Shown here: piece by piece, positions 39,939 to 49,600 of the stretch | How positions within the stretch are numbered: position 1 is the first letter of the stretch | Layout: each line of letters opens with the position of its first letter | NCBI RefSeq assembly: GCF_963506605.1 | Contig: NC_083283.1 | Span: 84,010,001 to 84,074,000, forward strand | DNA length: 64,000 nt | Source: Zootoca vivipara | Lineage: Eukaryota | Reading direction: 5' to 3' | Position numbers and translations under genes: made by a program | Notes under the pieces: generated by a model | What the model saw: only the letters and a program-made list of their open reading frames with translations | Database searches by the model: none | Told to the model about the DNA's origin: nothing

Positions 39939-40600
39939 TCCCCTGGCAGGGGGTTGGGGCGTGAAAATTGACGCTGGAAATCCTTGTTTACCAAGAAGAT
40001 AAGCGGTTCCTACCTTCTTCTGACTTGGGCTTTATTTCATGTGGTCACACACACTCACATTTTATTTTATTTTTAAATAGCCTTGCCAATCCAAAATAAT
40101 TGATATACATTTAGACTCGAGCATGAAACATTGGGTTTCCAATGGGTTGACCTTTGGTCGGTCTCTATTCAGCCCCAGGGAGAGAGACGTCGGGCGGGGA
40201 TAGAATTAGAAGTTCCCGCATTGCACCTTTGTATATCACTCTATTTATTAAGTCTATGGTTCGGTGCAGCCGATTGATTGATTTACCCACAATACCACGC
40301 GACTCCCCAGGAGAACTTTGCATAACCACGCCCGTCGCGTTGTGCTGGTTGGCCGCGAAGACGACAAGAATAAACCAACGGGACGCGCCGATTGGCCAGC
40401 AGGTTGAGCTTCGGGGAGCGGGGGGAACTCCGAGTGCCAAGATGGCGGCCTCCTCAGCTGCGCGGGTCGTTCAGGGTGGCCTCTCTCGGAACCTCAAGGA
40501 GATCCGGATCCACCTCTGCCAGCGGTCGCCGGCCAGCCAGGGGGTCAGGTACGCGAGAGGAGGGGAGGCCTTTCCCTCGCCTGACAGCCCGGCCTTCTCC
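39420..40600. promoter_or_regulatory. Head-to-head promoter region of IK and NDUFA2
   Basis: Start codons at 39639(-) and 40442(+), ~800 bp apart; two CpG-rich patches; CCAAT (ATTGG 40391); YY1 motif AAGATGGCGGC at the NDUFA2 start. Confidence 0.75.
39881..39938. repeat. (TAT)n microsatellite between the IK and NDUFA2 starts
   Basis: About 19 perfect TAT units. Confidence 0.95.
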
Positions 40601-43600
40601 GCTCATTTTTTTAAAGGTTGCAACTTGATAGGTCGTGGGGTGTGGGGAGATGCTCACAGCCAGCTTTATTATAATAATTATTGTCACTGTCACATATTTA
40701 CTGTGCTCATGTCCCGCTTTTTTCCCTTTCAGGGACTTGAAGCGGCTTAGAGATAAAAAATTAAGAACCGCTAAATAAAAATAGGAAAAGCAATAATTAA
40801 AAACAATTAAGTATTCATAGAATTCTTAGCCTCTCTCTGTTTCGCAAGGTGAGGTTTGCTGGTTTGCTTAGGGAATGGGGGGCGCCGGCGTGAAAGGCAG
40901 TTAACAGTGGCCGTTAGTTGTCCTTTTGCATGTTCGTATCAAATACTTGAAAAAACTCCCGGAACAAGGCATAGTGGACTTGTACTCAAAAAGGAATCAT
41001 AGAATCATAGTAGGGTTGGAAGGAATCCCAAGGGTCATCTAGTCAACCGCCTGCAATGCAGGAATCTGAACTAAAGCATCCAGGGCAGATGACCATGGAT
41101 GCTTTATCTGAGATTCCTGCATTGCAGGGGTTGGGGTGTGTGTGTGTGTGTGTGTTAGAATAAAAACAGCAGAGCACCAGCTTTACTACTAGGAACGGAC
41201 ATTGGTTTTGAATCACAAAAGTAAAGGTAAAAACCATGTTGATTAATAAGGGGGAAAGCCCAAAAGGTGTATTATTTTTATTATTTATTAAATTTGTATA
41301 CCGCCCTTTATCTGGATCACAGGGCAGTTCACAGCGCAAAAATAAAAGATAAAAACACAAAATATTTAATAAATCAAGAACAAAACCATACAAATAACCC
41401 ACATTTTAAATGATAAAGGATGTTAATCAGCTAATAATATTAGAAGCAATACCTTTACAAGGCCAACTCGTGCTTTAATGGGGGGGGGGAGCGGGAAGAG
41501 TAAAAAATGAGGCTCTAATAAATACTCCTATCTTGGCAAAGGTGCTGTGGGTGACCTAACACAAATTTTGGTAATTTGATTTGGATGTATCCAATAGGTC
41601 AACCCACCTTGAACATCTTATTGTTATAGCAGCTAACCAGCCGAGCAGAGAAGCCACAAAGCCAAGTCCAGTGCTGTTCTAGTTATCGTTATATATACAG
41701 TATATGCCACTGAAGAAGTTTGCTAAAGCTTAAACACATCTGGTATCCTCAGGATATACTGAACATTACTGGATTATATTAACCTCTTTTAGGCTACTAG
41801 AATTTTTTTAAGGAAAAAGGTGATACACAGTTAAACCTCGGTTCCCGAATGGCTCCGTTTTCAAACATTTCAGCTCCCAAAACCGAAAACCTGAAAGTAA
41901 ATGCTCCGGTTTTCAAACTTTTTTGGAAGCCGAACATCCGACACGGCTTCCGCTTGAGTGCAGGATGCTCTTGCAACCAGTTGGAAGCCGCTCCTCAGTT
42001 GTTGAACATTTCGGAAGCCGAACAATCTTCCGGAATGGATTACTTTCAACAACTGAGGTTTGACTGTACTAGTCATATTGTTTTCTTCACACCTTGCTGA
42101 GCTTTAGCTCAGTTTTTTAAAAACTGTGTTCATGGGGAACTGGGTTTTTAAGAAATTTGTAATGTTGGACAAGCTGCACTGAAATACAGTGTACTTATCA
42201 CTACAGCTCTGGAATTTTGTTGGATGTGTTTGGAGCACAGCCAGATGTTTAAAAAATGGCAAGACCCCTAGAACATGCGCCCCAAACCCTGTGCTCCAGA
42301 TAAATACAGTATGGGAAGTATTCTCTGAATGTTTGACACTTGAAAGCCACTATCTATATTGTCAGAGGGCCTGGTATGGCTACTCTAGAGTAACGACTCC
42401 AGCATGGTCTTTTAAGGTTTTTATTAAGTGCTGATTATTTACAGTGTTCAGAGCAGTAAAAATGCATCCTTAAGGTGAGGTGTCTGAACTCCCGAATGGC
42501 GATTGGCGCGTTTTCTTCCAGCACCACAGCTTTGGCAGACCCAACCTCTTCCCCCTACGTTTGCGTCGCAATTCGGGAGTTGGGGGAATTGGCCTCCCCC
42601 CTGTGCGTCCAACTTCCTGTCCCACCTGCGGCTTGGGCTCCACAACCTTGCCTGAGCCTCGGACACCACTTCCTGACTCTCCGCTGGAGGCAGAGCTCTC
42701 CTTACTCTCTCCCGCGCTTGGGGATGGGCTGGAACTTAAGATGGGAGGGACTTCCCTGTATCCCTCGTCCCTCACATCCATCCCCCTCCCAGGCTCCTCT
42801 CCCCCCCTTCCTAGTGGCTCTCCGCTTGCTGGGGACGAGTGAAACCCCAAGAAGTCTGTGGCATCCGAGCCTGTGGGTGTAAAAATTTCCCCCCAATCCT
42901 GCGATCTTTCTCCTTCCCCCTGAGAAGACGGGAATCCCAAGAAGTCAGTGGCGTCAGAGCTGGTGGGAGTAAAAATGTTCTGCCAGTCCTCTCCTGCCTC
43001 TGACGTCGTTGACCTCGGTGAAACCCACACCTCTTCTTCCGTGTCCTCAAATTCCGCTTCCCATCTCCATGGAGAGCTCCTGCCTGCTATCCCTTCCTCC
43101 TGCCCCTCCCCCTCTCCTTCCCTTTCCATGTGCCAGGGCTTGGGCCTGTGGGGGAACAGGGCGTGGAACTCTTCCACTAAAAATTCCTCAGGTACTTCTG
43201 TGGCCGGTATCCACTCATTGTGGGACGGCGGAGTGTCCTCCCATGCTATCAGGTACTCCAGTCCTCTCACCCCTCTCCTTGAGTCTAAAATCTCAGTTGC
43301 CTCATTGAGCTGTCGGGCGTCTCCCGTCTCCCCCCCTCCCTCTGGAGGCTGATCGCTGTCCCTGAACCTGGTACTTTCCCTGTACGGCGACAGCAGCGAT
43401 CTATGAAACACTGGGTGCACTCTCATGTCCTCCGGCAGTGCTAGCCTGAAGGCTACCGGGTTGACCTGTTGCGTGACCGTGAAGGGGCCCAGCCTCCTGG
43501 GTGCTAACTTCTTGCATCGCCCCCTGGTGGGAAGACCTTCCGAGGATAACCAAACCTTGTCCCCCACCCTGATGACCTCTCCCGGTCGCCTGTGGCGATC

Positions 43601-46600
43601 TGCCCCCTTCTTGTACGCTTCCTTGGCCCTCTCCAAGTGTTCTCTGAGCTGCTGGTGCACCGTCTCCAGGTCCTCTGCCCAATCCTCTGCCTGTGGGCCC
43701 TCCTCCTCCTCCTCCCCCTCCCTCTCCGGGAAAGATCTGAGGTCGCGCCCGTAGTTGGCCTTAAAGGGCGACACCCCTGTGGAGACGTGCACCGCATTGT
43801 TGTAGGCAAATTCTGCCAGTGGCAGGCGATCCACCCAGTCCGTTTGCCTCTGGCTGACGTAACATCTCAGGTACTGCTGCAGAATGGCGTTGACCCGCTC
43901 CGCCTGTCCATTGGTTTGCGGGTGCCTAGCCGTCGACAAGCTGACCTCCACCTGCAGGAGGTTCATGAGCCGCCGCCAGAACCTGGAAACAAATTGGCGG
44001 CCACGATCCGAAATAACCCTTAAAGGCAATCCATGCAGTCTGAATACGTGGTCAACAAACAGTTTGGCCGTCTCTTCTGCCGAGACCGCCCTGGCACACG
44101 GTATAAAATGGCACATTTTGGACATGAGGTCCACCACCACCAACACTGCGGTCTTGCCCCTGGACGACGGCAGGTCTGTGATGAAGTCCATGGACACTAC
44201 TTCCCACGGCCTGTGCGGTGTGGCTAAGGGCTCCAGCAAACCTGCTGGTGGCGCTCTGACCACCTTTGCTCGCTGGCAGGTGTCACATCCCCTTACATAA
44301 TCCCGAACATCCTCCCGCACCCCTGGCCACCAGAAGTGTCTCATGACTAGGTGAGTGGTTTTGTCCCTTCCAAAATGACCCGCCGTTGGGTTGTCGTGCA
44401 TCTGCTTGAGGGCCTTACCTCTCAGCTGTTTGGTTGGTAGGTACAGGGCTCCCTTGTAAAAAAGCAAACCCCTCCTTTCCTCAAAGTCTTTGGCCTGCTC
44501 CCCCCCCTCTCAGTTCTCTGAAGATGCGGGTGGCAAATTCATCAGCTGCTGTCAGTGCTGTGAGTTCTGCCTCGCTCACCACTGCTGCTCCGCAGGACCA
44601 TGCTGATGGGGGGAAAATATGCCTGGGTGCCGGTGGCAACTCCTCCTCCATGTACTCTGGCTTGCGGGAGAGGGCATCCGCCCTGACATTCTGCTCTCCC
44701 GGGATGTAGTGGATGGAGAAGTTGAAGTTCGAGAAGAACTCTGCCCACCGTATCTGCCGCTGGTTGAGCACCCTGGCAGTTCTCCAGAACTCCAGGTTCT
44801 TGTGGTCTGTGCACACCTGGATGGGGTGCTTGGCGCCCACCAGGAAGTGTCGCCAGTGCTGGAACGCAGCGTGGATCGCGAGAAGTTCCCTGTCAAACAC
44901 TGTGTAGTTGCGTTCCGGCTGGGTCAGCTTCCTGGAGAAGAAGGCACAGGGTCTCCACTCTCTGTTGGCGTCCAGTTGCAACAGAATCGCTCCCAGAGCC
45001 TTGTCCGAAGCATCTGTCTCCAGGCGTAGGGGCGCATCCTGCACCACGTGGAACAGGTGCTGGTCTGAAGCGAATACCCTCTTGAGGCTTTCGAACGCTG
45101 CTTGCGCCTCTGGTGTCCACCGGAACTTCTGCTTGCCTCTCAGGCAGTCGGTGATAGGAGCCGTGACGCGAGAGAAGTTCTTGATGAACTTCCTGTAGAA
45201 GTTCGCGAAGCCTAGTAGGCGTTGGGCATCTTTGCGCGTCCTGGGGCTGTGCCAGTCCAGGATGGCCTGCACCTTGTCCTTGTCCATCGCCAGCCCCTTG
45301 TCTGACAGCTTGTAGCCTAGGAAGTCCACTTCTTTGGTGTGAAACTTGCACTTCTCCAGCTTCACATACAGGTGGTTGTCCTTCAGGCGCTGCAATACCT
45401 CCCTGACATCCTTCACATGCTGCACTGGGTCATTGGAGTAGATAAGGATGTCATCCAGAAAGACCAAGCAGTTCTTGAAGAGGAGGGACCCCAGGACGTG
45501 GTGCATGAAGGCCTGGAAGCATGCTGAGCCCCCTTGCAACCCGAAGGGCATCACCAGATATTCAAAAGAGCCCAGAGGCGTGAACATCGTGGTTTTCCAT
45601 TCATCACCCTCCCGGATCCTAATCAAGTTGTACGCCCCTCTTAGGTCGAGCTTGGTGAAGATCTTGCCCCTGCGTGCCGCTGTCAGGAGATCATCCACTC
45701 TGGGCATGGGGAAAGCCACTGGCTCTGTCACCGAATTCAGCCGTCTAAAATCCACCACCAGACGGCGCTGTTGCGTGTCTTTCTTGTCCACCCAGAAGAC
45801 CGGGCTGCCCCCTGCTGCCTTGCTTTCTCTGATGAACCCCCGCTTGAGGTTCTTGTCGATGAAAGCGCGCAGATCCTCCAGTTCCTGATCTGACATGGCG
45901 TACAGCTTGGCTGGGGGTATAGTTGCCCCTGGCACCAGGTTGATCTGGCAGTCAAAAGGCCTGTGTGGGGGTAGGTGGTCGGACTCCACTTCGCTGAAGA
46001 CCTCCTGCAGGTCCCAGTACGGCTTGGGTATTGCCTCACCCCCCTTGACGTGCATGGTGGCCACCGTGGCTATCGGAGGCCCCTCCCCTGGTTGGTGCTG
46101 CATGCAATGTTCCAGACAAAAGTCCGATCCAAAAGTGATGCATCTCTGGTGCCAACTTATGGAGGGGTCGTGGCGCGTCAGCCAGCTCATGCCCAAGACG
46201 ATGGGGGGGTCTGAGATGGTTGTGACGTTGAAAGCCAGTGTCTCTGAGTGCCTTCCCACCGTCATTCTCATGGGGGGGTTTGATGCGTGATGGCCCCTCC
46301 CAGCAGCTCTCTGCCGTCAATGGTGGCCACGTGCAGGGGAAAATCCAGCTGCAGAAGTTGGATCTGGTGCTCTTCCGCAAAGTTTCTCGAGAAGAAGTTG
46401 GCTGAGGCACCACTGTCAATTAAGGCGAGGACTGTCAGGGGATAGCCATTTGGGAGCGTGAGCGTGACTTCTAGAACCACTCCTGCTCTGGGAGGGGTGG
46501 GCTGGCTGTGCTCCTCTCTGTGCGGGTGGGCGGGCGGGGGCTGTTGTCTGCTGACTGTGCCTGGCCGCTCCCCCTTGTCTCCTGCAGCCAGGCTGTCTCG

Positions 46601-49600
46601 TTTCCCTGCTGTGGTGCTGCGTCAGCTGGGGAAGGTACAACCGTTCCCGCCTTTCCTTGCCACTCTCTGCGATGAGGGCAGTCTCTGACGCGATGCCGGG
46701 GGGAGTTGCAGAGAAAGCAATTCCCGCCTCTTCCCTCCTTGCGTCTTGGCGCCGCCGGGGTTTGAAAAGCCCCCGCGCGCGCTCCTCCGATCTCCATCGG
46801 TTCCGGCTCTGGGCTTGGCCTGGGCGGGTGTGGGGGCGGGCCCTGGGGTGGGGTTTGGTGATGTGGTCTGTCCTGGGAGCGTGGGAACCAAGGTTTTGCT
46901 GCGCGCGTCGCTTGTTTGTCATTCCATCTGGATTCCTGTCTCACCCCCACCGCTAGCGCCGCTTTGCTTAACTCATCCATCGTTCGCGGTTTGGGACCTC
47001 TTGCCAGCTCATCCTTAACGTCTGCGTGCAAACCCATGTAGAAGGCTGATTTCACTGGCTCACTTTGCAGATCCCACCCCAGTTTGTGCACCAGCATGGT
47101 GAATCTCGCCCAGTAGTCCCTAACTGTCGATTTTCCTTGTGTTAAGTTATGAAGCTCCTCTTTAGTGGCCTCCATTTCACTGTCACTAGCGTACATTATT
47201 TTTAAAGCTTCTAGAAATAATTTTGCGTTCTTCATGCAAGGATTTTTTTGCGCGATGAGCGGTCTTACCCATTCTCGGGCGGCCCCCGTCAAATGCTCTA
47301 TGATAAAGGAGACTCTGTGCGCGTCATCTGGGAATTCTGCTGCATGCAATTCCAGCGCATAATTTATTTCTGTCTCGAATCCTAGGTACTCCCTAGGGTC
47401 GCCGCTAAACTTGGTGACTAGGCTCTGTCCCCTTCTCACTTGGACTAGCTGCGGCTGGGGCACCCCCCCACCTCTAGCGGCTTTCTCCTCTTCCAACTTT
47501 TTCTGTAGGTCCAAAACCATCACCCTTAGCTGTTTCTCAGTCTCCTCTTTTGTCCTCACCTGGTCCACCAGCTTGTTCAGCTCCTCCTGCGCCCCTCGCG
47601 CTTCCTCCTGAGCGGCATGCAATTGCTGCTGTGCGTGCGCTGTGAGGTTCTGCAGCTCCTGCTTCGCTGCTTCGGCCTCCAGCCTCCAATGCTCAGCCTC
47701 TTGAGCGCTCATCGCTGCACTCCAAAGTAGCCAAAAAAAGATTCGGGAGTTGCTGTCAGAGGGCCTGGTATGGCTACTCTAGAGTAACGACTCCAGCATG
47801 GTCTTTTAAGGTTTTTATTAAGTGCTGATTATTTACAGTGTTCAGAGCAGTAAAAATGCATCCTTAAGGTGAGGTGTCTGAACTCCCGAATGGCGATTGG
47901 CGCGTTTTCTTCCAGCACCACAGCTTTGGCAGACCCAACCTCTTCCCCCTACGTTTGCGTCGCAATTCGGGAGTTGGGGGAATTGGCCTCCCCCCTGTGC
48001 GTCCAACTTCCTGTCCCACCTGCGGCTTGGGCTCCACAACCTTGCCTGAGCCTCGGACACCACTTCCTGACTCTCCGCTGGAGGCAGAGCTCTCCTTACT
48101 CTCTCCCGCGCTTGGGGATGGGCTGGAACTTAAGATGGGAGGGACTTCCCTGTATCCCTCGTCCCTCACATCCATCCTACTGACTTTTCATGAAAGTGTA
48201 GAACACCCTCCGCCTAATGCATGCTGGTGTGTTTGCTTCTTGTTTGCAGAGATTTCATCAAACAACATTATGTGACTTTAAAGAAAGCAAATCCAGATTT
48301 CCCTATCCTGATCAGAGAGTGCTCAGATGTGCAACCCAAACTCTGGGCTAGATATGGTGAGTTTGGTGGGGGGTGTATGTTACAAGTTTGCTATACAATT
48401 AGGTAGAAATAATATGTTGGACAGTTTAAGTATTAGTCTTTCCTTGAGGAATAAAGCTTTTCAGCCCTGCCTGGATTTTTATTGTTGAAGGCCACTAGCA
48501 AACACTTCTCGGACAACTCCAGCCCAGTAAGCCACTTACACTTTCTCCCCACAACTGCTCCAAATCTGCTCTGTAATGTTTTCTCTCCTATACAAATAGA
48601 TTGTGCCGGAAAACATTTCCATTGACAGACAACAGAAACCTTGGCAGTTTTTTCAAATGTTGGCTGGTAGCTTACATGAAGTATCTAGTGCAGGGGTCCC
48701 CAGACTTACCGGCGTTTGGGCCGGTTCCCACCGCGCCGATCACGCGGCGGGCCGGAGGGCGGGGGAGCGCGCGCCCGTGCGCATGCGCACGGGCGCTTAC
48801 TGGCGCGGCGGCACGCTTCCAGGGTGGGGAAAGCGCCGAAAAAACCGTTGTGCGCATGCGCGTGGGCCTCCCCCGACCCGGAAGTGCACCAGAAATGACT
48901 TATTCCGGGTCGGGAGAGGCCCATACGCATGCGCACAAAGGATTTTCGGCGCTTTTTTCCCAACCCGGAAGAGCGCTGCCGCGCTGCGCACCGTAAGAGC
49001 GGGCGGCAGCGGCGGGGGTCGTCGCGGGCCGGATTGGCAGGCTAATTGGGCCGCATCCAGCCCCCGGGCCGTAGTCTGGGGACCCTGATCTAGTGGGAGC
49101 AGAGCTGGCACTCTCTTCTGATAGAAATATTTCAAATATGTGTCCCCAGGGTGCTTTCCCCCCTGGAGTTACCTTTTAGAATTTTTAAACAAAAATGTTT
49201 TTTTTTTAAAAAAAACCGAGTTAGAGAGCTGCTTTTGTTAGACAAGGAAATTGCTGCATCTCTGTAATGCAGAAGGGATGAAGAGAAAATGGATAAACAT
49301 AAGACAGGAGAGTGGATAGAAATGGTCTGTGGCTGCCAGAGAGGAAACTTAATTGAGCACATGGCCTATGGCAAATAATGAATTATCTCCCTCTCTCTCC
49401 CCCCCACCAAAGGGCTCTTGTTTCAACACTTATCCCACTCATTTTCTTCCAAAATAGGAGCTGTTGAAAAAGTTCAACAGTTTTTAAGTTTTAAAGTAAA
49501 CTTAGCTAGTCTTGACTTAATTAAGGCTCAGGCCCAACTTAATATTTCTGATACCTGGCACCATGAGGCCTCTTTACTAGTACTTTGTCAGATACATCTA

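Follow-up and report, generated by a model that had tools for sequence, protein, structure and literature searches.

The 64,000-nucleotide stretch of Zootoca vivipara DNA analysed here (positions 84,010,001 to 84,074,000 of contig NC_083283.1, referred to as the window; all positions are counted from its first letter) contains a Ty3/gypsy retrotransposon with long terminal repeats (LTRs), which is situated within intron 1 of an NDUFA2-like gene (complex I B8 subunit, plus strand), in antisense orientation, and fills most of that intron. The open reading frame (ORF) of its integrase (IN) runs past the chromodomain into a long acidic tail, and this tail carries two copies of a short motif that resembles the peptides by which cellular proteins bind LEDGF and similar host factors. 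The features on which the analysis of this tail depends are the following.

42360-48177, minus strand: whole Ty3/gypsy chromovirus-like LTR retrotransposon, 5818 bp, with an LTR pair and the Pfam domains of gag, reverse transcriptase (RT)/RNase H and IN in the expected order
42470-44467, minus strand: integrase ORF, 665 amino acids, with Pfam Integrase_H2C2, rve, SH3_Tf2-1 and Chromo, then the long tail
43163-43300, minus strand: chromodomain, amino acids 390-435 (Pfam Chromo, E = 3.4e-6, score 27.3 bits, cut-off 25.1)
42785-43162, minus strand: internal part of the IN tail, amino acids 436-561, 126 codons, Ser/Thr/Gly-rich and acidic (23% D/E)
43019-43066, minus strand: degenerate upstream unit, with a W-x-x-x-F helix part and an acidic linker, and W-V-S-P at the position of FxGF
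42932-42991, minus strand: motif unit 1, E-D-W-Q-N-I-F, a 9-residue S/T/D linker and F-L-G-F
42842-42901, minus strand: motif unit 2, Q-D-W-G-E-I-F, a 9-residue S/T/D linker and F-L-G-F

An earlier sequence-only reading of this DNA had quoted two units from the acidic tail after the chromodomain, and both were found exactly as quoted. Each unit is 20 residues long and consists of W-x-x-I-F, a 9-residue linker and FLGF. The degenerate upstream unit looks like a third one and resembles the second unit of the relatives described below. When D-F-L-G-F was back-translated, the resulting pattern had only two matches in the 64 kb, both in the units (0.10 matches expected; 0 of 100 shuffles reached two). 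The amino acid composition of the tail (71% disorder-promoting and 19% order-promoting residues) differed from that of the IN core, for which the corresponding values were 57% and 36%.

The 90-nt (30-amino-acid) tandem repeat described in the same reading proved not to be a clean one, given that Tandem Repeats Finder called no tandem repeat at the two units and that only the 20-codon cores are alike (77% nucleotide identity), whereas the 10-codon spacer shows 23% identity, which is the random level. Its statement that the W, IF and DFLGF residues are kept while synonymous positions differ was borne out by a codon-level comparison, made only between the two units within the window copy (the relatives are known as proteins). 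The cores differ by four amino acids (E/Q, Q/G, N/E and S/G). Synonymous differences numbered 8 on about 12.3 sites (pS = 0.65, close to saturation) and non-synonymous differences 6 on about 47.7 sites (pN = 0.13), giving a pN/pS of about 0.2. Since pS is near-saturated, pN is low and the spacer is random-like, this pointed to an old duplication of which both copies were kept by selection on the peptide and not on the DNA. The units are very probably selected functional motifs of some kind.

Database searches with the integrase retrieved lizard proteins as relatives, mostly from Podarcis muralis, with an IN core 57-72% identical to that of the window copy, and wherever a relative of this group has a tail beyond the chromodomain, this tail bears one or two units built in the same way. 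Five diverged lizard lineages retain one or two units, although their tails are otherwise unalignable with that of the window. Among the 15 motif instances from these five lineages, FxGF was present in 15/15, the linker was 8 or 9 residues long in 15/15 and composed of D/E/S/T/G/P, and the helix part read [W/F]-x-x-x-F in 12/15, with a one-residue shift in the P0007/8/10 lineage. The distances of the units from the end of the chromodomain are also conserved among the lineages. A comparison across related families had been proposed earlier as a check on the conservation of W-x-x-I-F and FxGF, and in the five-lineage tail alignment the invariant columns were W, F, F, G and F and no others. In composition-preserving shuffles of the five lineage tails in which the bipartite pattern occurs as written, each tail gave p ≤ 6e-5 for it, values that are descriptive since the pattern was derived from the same data; a sixth tail (P0007) did not match the pattern as written. 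Single decayed copies show knock-outs of the motif (FEEF in P0013, and V-S in place of V-F in P0127).

Further searches did not extend the taxonomic range of such tails. A phmmer search with the 126-residue tail against 1.84 billion representatives gave four matches and no true homologues, the matches being three bacterial repeat proteins and the tandem-repeat ORF P0001, which shares N-F-T-P-T-S-Q-D-A-T-D with the tail. No match was obtained in a homologous-protein search with the window chromodomain plus tail, and the same kind of search with the P0005 tail found P0005, P0013 and P0084 only. The 60-residue stretch with the two motifs gave one chance match (E = 1) by phmmer against PDB sequences, and an ESM Atlas search gave no match. 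P0001 is an 889-residue ORF with about 12 tandem units of about 70 residues, each of which contains N-F-T-P-T-S-Q-D-A-T-D, a peptide close to an 11-residue stretch of the window tail; it looks like a satellite grown from this part of the tail of a related element.

For comparison of the units with host motifs, the definitions of the motif classes were taken from the review literature. Motifs that interact with TFIIS N-terminal domains (TNDs), termed TND-interacting motifs (TIMs), have an obligate short helix with F/V/L/I, an acidic linker of 8-16 residues rich in G and in CK2-phosphorylated S/T, and FxGF, the last being optional for TIMs in general but found, and indispensable, in every known partner of LEDGF/HRP2 (PMC9987994). 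Each TND selects its own set of TIMs, and several proteins have two or three TIMs in series (PMC9987994). The motifs bound by the integrase-binding domain (IBD) of LEDGF, here called IBD-binding motifs (IBMs), follow the consensus D/E-x-E-x-F-x-G-F (PMC8022399). The literature confirmed this consensus and, of the examples given in the sequence-only reading, the MLL1 residues F129 and F133 on the helix and F148-L149-G-F151 behind it (PMC8022399). The Drosophila protein JIL-1 binds the fly LEDGF-type domain via DFxGFDE.

At the sequence level the lizard units have all three of these parts. The putative helix part is represented by W-Q-N-I-F and W-G-E-I-F in the window, and its W and F do not vary among the five aligned lineages. 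Over the 15 instances the linkers contain 0-7 D/E and 1-5 S/T each, and CK2-type S/T-x-x-D/E sites occur at 1-2 per linker in 11/15 instances, including one in each window unit (there are none in P0006 or P0007/8/10). FxGF follows in every case, and the full D/ExExFxGF consensus is matched by the first units of P0005/P0126 and P0084 and by both units of P0019. In sequence, the lizard units agree with the TIM/IBM class in each of these parts.

The history of the motif was examined in a tree of 91 integrase cores, from which chromodomain and tail were excluded. The motif carriers formed one clade (support of 100 in the Shimodaira-Hasegawa-like approximate likelihood ratio test, SH-aLRT), with a family from Anolis carolinensis without the motif as sister, and because the carriers form one clade a single gain suffices. 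This clade also stands apart in its chromodomain. Chromodomains of group I have the aromatic cage Y/F-W-Y/F, whereas those of group II, reported only from plants, are without residues 1 and 3 (PMC3605345). The window chromodomain reads N..W..T at the cage, compared with Y/F..W..Y/F in relatives, and thereby falls outside group I. All motif carriers are without cage residues 1 and 3, and all scorable relatives with an intact cage (about 65) have tails without the motif, 4-141 residues long and nearly all shorter than 40. This association of cage loss with the motif is not a statistical correlation, since it represents one evolutionary event. The loss of the cage together with the gain of the FxGF tail nevertheless looks like an exchange of targeting modules.

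In the cage-intact sister family from Anolis carolinensis (P0035) the tail is 115 residues long and contains V-V-T-D-E-E-E-N-L-G-F, in which x-L-G-F comes after an acidic run but the first F is missing. The motif may have arisen from such a stretch, or the stretch may be what is left of a decayed motif.

We consider it somewhat more likely than not that the units mimic host TIMs of the type bound by the LEDGF IBD and that they tether the integrase to LEDGF/PSIP1 or HRP2/HDGFL2. These two proteins appear to be the likeliest partners because FxGF never varies. The tail would be a flexible arm whose two or possibly three peptides dock on a domain of the TFIIS-N-terminal type. The amphipathic helix W-x-x-I-F, like F129-x-x-x-F133 of MLL1, would enter the first hydrophobic pocket of the five-helix bundle, the acidic or phosphorylatable linker of 8-9 residues would lie on a basic patch, and FxGF would fill the second pocket. 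An intasome docked in this way on readers of H3K36me3 would be tethered to transcribed gene bodies, the two copies of the unit could provide avidity or bridge a dimeric reader, and the tether would replace or supplement a chromodomain that has lost its methyl-lysine cage. The partner, the dependence on phosphorylation and the effect on insertion sites are inferred. The mimicry proposed in the sequence-only reading is partly supported, by the resemblance to the TIM/IBM class in sequence and by the purifying selection on the peptide and the retention in five lineages of one clade, and circumstantially by the loss of the chromodomain cage in that clade, while binding to LEDGF/HRP2 or another TND and a bias of insertions towards transcribed gene bodies are predicted. 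The wider proposal, that a vertebrate Ty3/gypsy clade swapped a heterochromatin-reading chromodomain function for a phospho-tunable FxGF tether to LEDGF/HRP2 and so reached gene-body targeting convergently with lentiviruses, albeit by a disordered-motif mode, is put forward more tentatively.

Several observations weigh against this interpretation. The window linkers are weakly acidic, with 2 D/E among 9 residues and 4-5 S/T (the least acidic but one), the residues before FxGF read D-A-T-D-F-L-G-F and have T instead of E at -2, and the linkers of the P0007/8/10 lineage have no D/E at all. Given such weakly acidic linkers, binding of the window units would depend on phosphorylation or be weak. 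Nor does loss of the cage prove that chromodomain function was lost, because plant group II chromodomains are still regarded as directing integration (PMC3605345). A single-sequence AlphaFold2 model, made with no alignment, had a predicted local distance difference test score (pLDDT) of 35 throughout, chromodomain included, and is uninformative on helicity and disorder. Few carriers are known, namely Podarcis muralis proteins, two further contigs and the window genome. RNA reads over the tail of the family are very few, almost all from one strand and mostly derived from related families. The window copy may be non-autonomous because its pol is split over three frame segments (see below), and a single antisense insertion in an intron (n = 1) is uninformative on preference and cannot test targeting.

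Three other explanations were weighed. The one that survives best is that the motifs are selected but serve a partner or purpose unconnected with TNDs and play no part in TND-based target choice, for instance as a diaromatic WxxxF-type or acidic-aromatic activation-type ligand, as a W-x-x-I motif of the LC3 type, as a ligand for an adaptor or for nuclear import, or in regulating integrase stability or multimerisation. W-x-x-x-F in an acidic setting fits other diaromatic motif classes too, E-D-W-Q-N-I agrees with the acidic W-x-x-I pattern of LC3-interacting regions, and selection proves function but not which function. However, such a purpose leaves unexplained the second invariant element, FxGF, at a fixed distance of 8-9 residues, and it is this bipartite geometry that defines the IBM/TIM class. 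Furthermore, several instances depart from W-x-x-[ILV] (W-E-E-Q, W-E-A-G), while none departs from F at +4. We regard an explanation of this kind as unlikely.

It is less likely still that the units are true TIMs whose partner is another TND protein of transcription elongation (TFIIS, IWS1, Elongin A, MED26 or PPP1R10/PNUTS), which would couple the integrase to elongating RNA polymerase II and not to H3K36me3 nucleosomes. No TIM lacks the helix and acidic linker, and the set of TIMs differs from one TND to the next (PMC9987994), and the degenerate unit at 43019-43066, which keeps helix and acidic linker without FxGF, has the form bound by non-LEDGF TNDs. On the other hand, a partner that requires FxGF best accounts for its strict retention in all 15 instances.

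A neutral duplication in a fortuitously open 3' region, resembling host motifs by chance, is very improbable: the G+C-rich region eases long open frames, the ORF even continues into the LTR, phmmer found no true relatives of the tail and the pol of the window copy is split between frames, but the low pN/pS with near-saturated synonymous change and a random-like spacer, the key residues and spacing kept in five lineages with otherwise unalignable tails, the shuffle values per matching lineage and the knock-outs expected of decayed copies all argue against it. On the basis of the shuffles, pN/pS and the five-lineage invariant columns, the neutral-repeat reading was rejected.

The remaining features of the element and of its host gene are as follows.

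47754-48177, minus strand: 5' LTR (TG...CA)
46471-47712, minus strand: gag ORF (Pfam Retrotrans_gag, Ty3_capsid)
44481-46271, minus strand: ORF for the C-terminal part of the protease (PR), RT and RNase H, in a frame that differs from that of the IN ORF and from that of the upstream open PR-like segment
42784-42809, minus strand: polypurine tract, directly upstream of the 3' LTR and within the open IN frame
42360-42783, minus strand: 3' LTR, into which the IN ORF extends for about 104 codons (stop at 42470-42472)
About 40472-40579, plus strand: peptide of NDUFA2-like exon 1
48250-48355, plus strand: NDUFA2-like exon 2 (Pfam L51_S25_CI-B8, E = 3e-14)

The element has its chromodomain on the C-terminal side of the integrase, which is the mark of a chromovirus. 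Support for the label 'sushi-type' of the sequence-only reading extends to Pfam SH3_Tf2-1 and to the placement of the element among vertebrate chromovirus-like elements. Its LTRs are 424-bp direct repeats at an offset of 5394 with 100% identity, and the retrotransposon is young. The pol of this copy consists of three open segments in two frames (frame 2 to 46271, frame 1 at 46316-44484 and frame 2 from 44509). The two frame changes (46316-46271 and 44509-44481) flank RT/RNase H despite the identical LTRs, the second lies within a G-rich run, and they may be real or assembly errors.

The LTR-encoded part of the IN ORF (42470-42783, minus strand) has the same letters at 47864-48177. IN ORFs of relatives likewise enter their own LTR, and their ends share Y-R-E-x-P-P-[IL]-[IL]-S-S, a basic cluster resembling a nuclear localization signal, and L-[LW]-C-W-K-[KR] near the stop. 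Because these LTR-encoded ends are common to the relatives, part of the U3 region is seemingly under coding constraint. An ORF that reaches into the LTR has a precedent in the plant CRM elements (PMC3605345).

No target-site duplication was seen at 42350-42360 and 48177-48190, which flank the identical LTRs. On the plus strand the flanks read ...CTATAT before the element and TACTGA after it (or TCCTAC, should CA be the end of the LTR). Two copies may have recombined, the boundary may be imprecise, or the cause may lie in the assembly. The sequence after the 5' LTR (47741-47891, minus strand; GCAACTCCCGAATC...) is unlike a usual tRNA primer-binding site.

Only 72 nt separate the outer edge of the 5' LTR from the downstream acceptor of exon 2 of the NDUFA2-like gene, and the polypyrimidine tract is intact. 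The sequence-only reading had placed the copy in an intron of a housekeeping gene, and the Pfam match of exon 2 identifies this as intron 1 of the NDUFA2-like gene, a gene of the expressed type. Among DNA contigs of organism A the family is present in highly repeated form. Positions 42666-43145 are matched by a contig of organism B that differs at 3 of 480 nt, with no difference in the motif cores, and among the variants listed none falls within the motif cores.

Tethering is known to govern where a handful of retroviruses and yeast elements integrate, and to our knowledge almost nothing is known about it for vertebrate LTR retrotransposons. If the tail binds LEDGF/HRP2, the element would be the first non-retroviral one shown to use that tether and would clearly exemplify how a host short linear motif is mimicked in the viral manner, and the lost chromodomain cage together with the gained FxGF tail would be a natural swap of targeting modules. 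Such binding would also help to explain the presence of elements of this kind in introns of expressed genes, and a small natural peptide tag that directs integrases to gene bodies could be derived from it. Peptides and insertion maps of young lizard families offer a direct test of the idea.

The cellular IBMs and TIMs (in MLL1/KMT2A, JPO2/CDCA7L, POGZ, IWS1, ASK/DBF4 and MED1, and in JIL-1 of Drosophila) are disordered and have the same bipartite build as the lizard units, with a helix part of the F-x-x-x-F type, an acidic or phosphorylatable linker and FxGF after acidic residues. They often occur two or three to a protein, as the motif is likewise multiple in the lizard tail, and the FLGF of the window is the same tetrapeptide as F148-F151 of MLL1 (PMC8022399). 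The lizard motif differs in being carried by a retrotransposon integrase and not by a host transcription factor, and in having a linker that, with 8-9 residues, is among the shortest in the range and that is S/T-rich and not acidic in the window family. In agreement with the earlier statement that no such motif was known from a gypsy integrase, full-text literature searches aimed at the question turned up no description of an IBM or TIM in an LTR-retrotransposon integrase. The nearest case is POGZ, a transposase-derived (pogo) protein with a LEDGF-binding FxGF motif (PMC8022399). POGZ is, however, a host gene domesticated from a DNA transposon and not an active retroelement, and it has no known role in target choice.

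With the chromoviruses the lizard element shares the chromodomain, which has lost cage residues 1 and 3 as in plant group II, but within a vertebrate clade and alongside the gain of an FxGF tail. In logic the closest systems are those of Ty1, murine leukaemia virus (MLV) and Ty5. The Ty1 integrase has an unstructured C-terminal tail with a short peptide that docks on the host protein AC40 and sets the insertion profile, and the same docking by a tail peptide is seen between the IN C-terminal tail of MLV and the ET domain of BET proteins and between the IN targeting domain of Ty5 and Sir4. The host partners and the chemistry of the motifs differ in these three systems, and none of them uses a TND or IBD. 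The integrase of human immunodeficiency virus type 1 (HIV-1) does reach transcribed, H3K36me3-marked gene bodies by way of the LEDGF IBD, as is proposed here for the lizard element. The HIV-1 integrase binds the IBD through a prearranged folded site, whereas the cellular partners do so, and the lizard integrase would do so, through an unstructured motif. Nothing in the present analysis points to a prearranged site of this kind in the lizard integrase, where the candidate interface is a motif of the tail. In that case the lizard element and HIV-1 would represent convergent use of the same host domain by different mechanisms.

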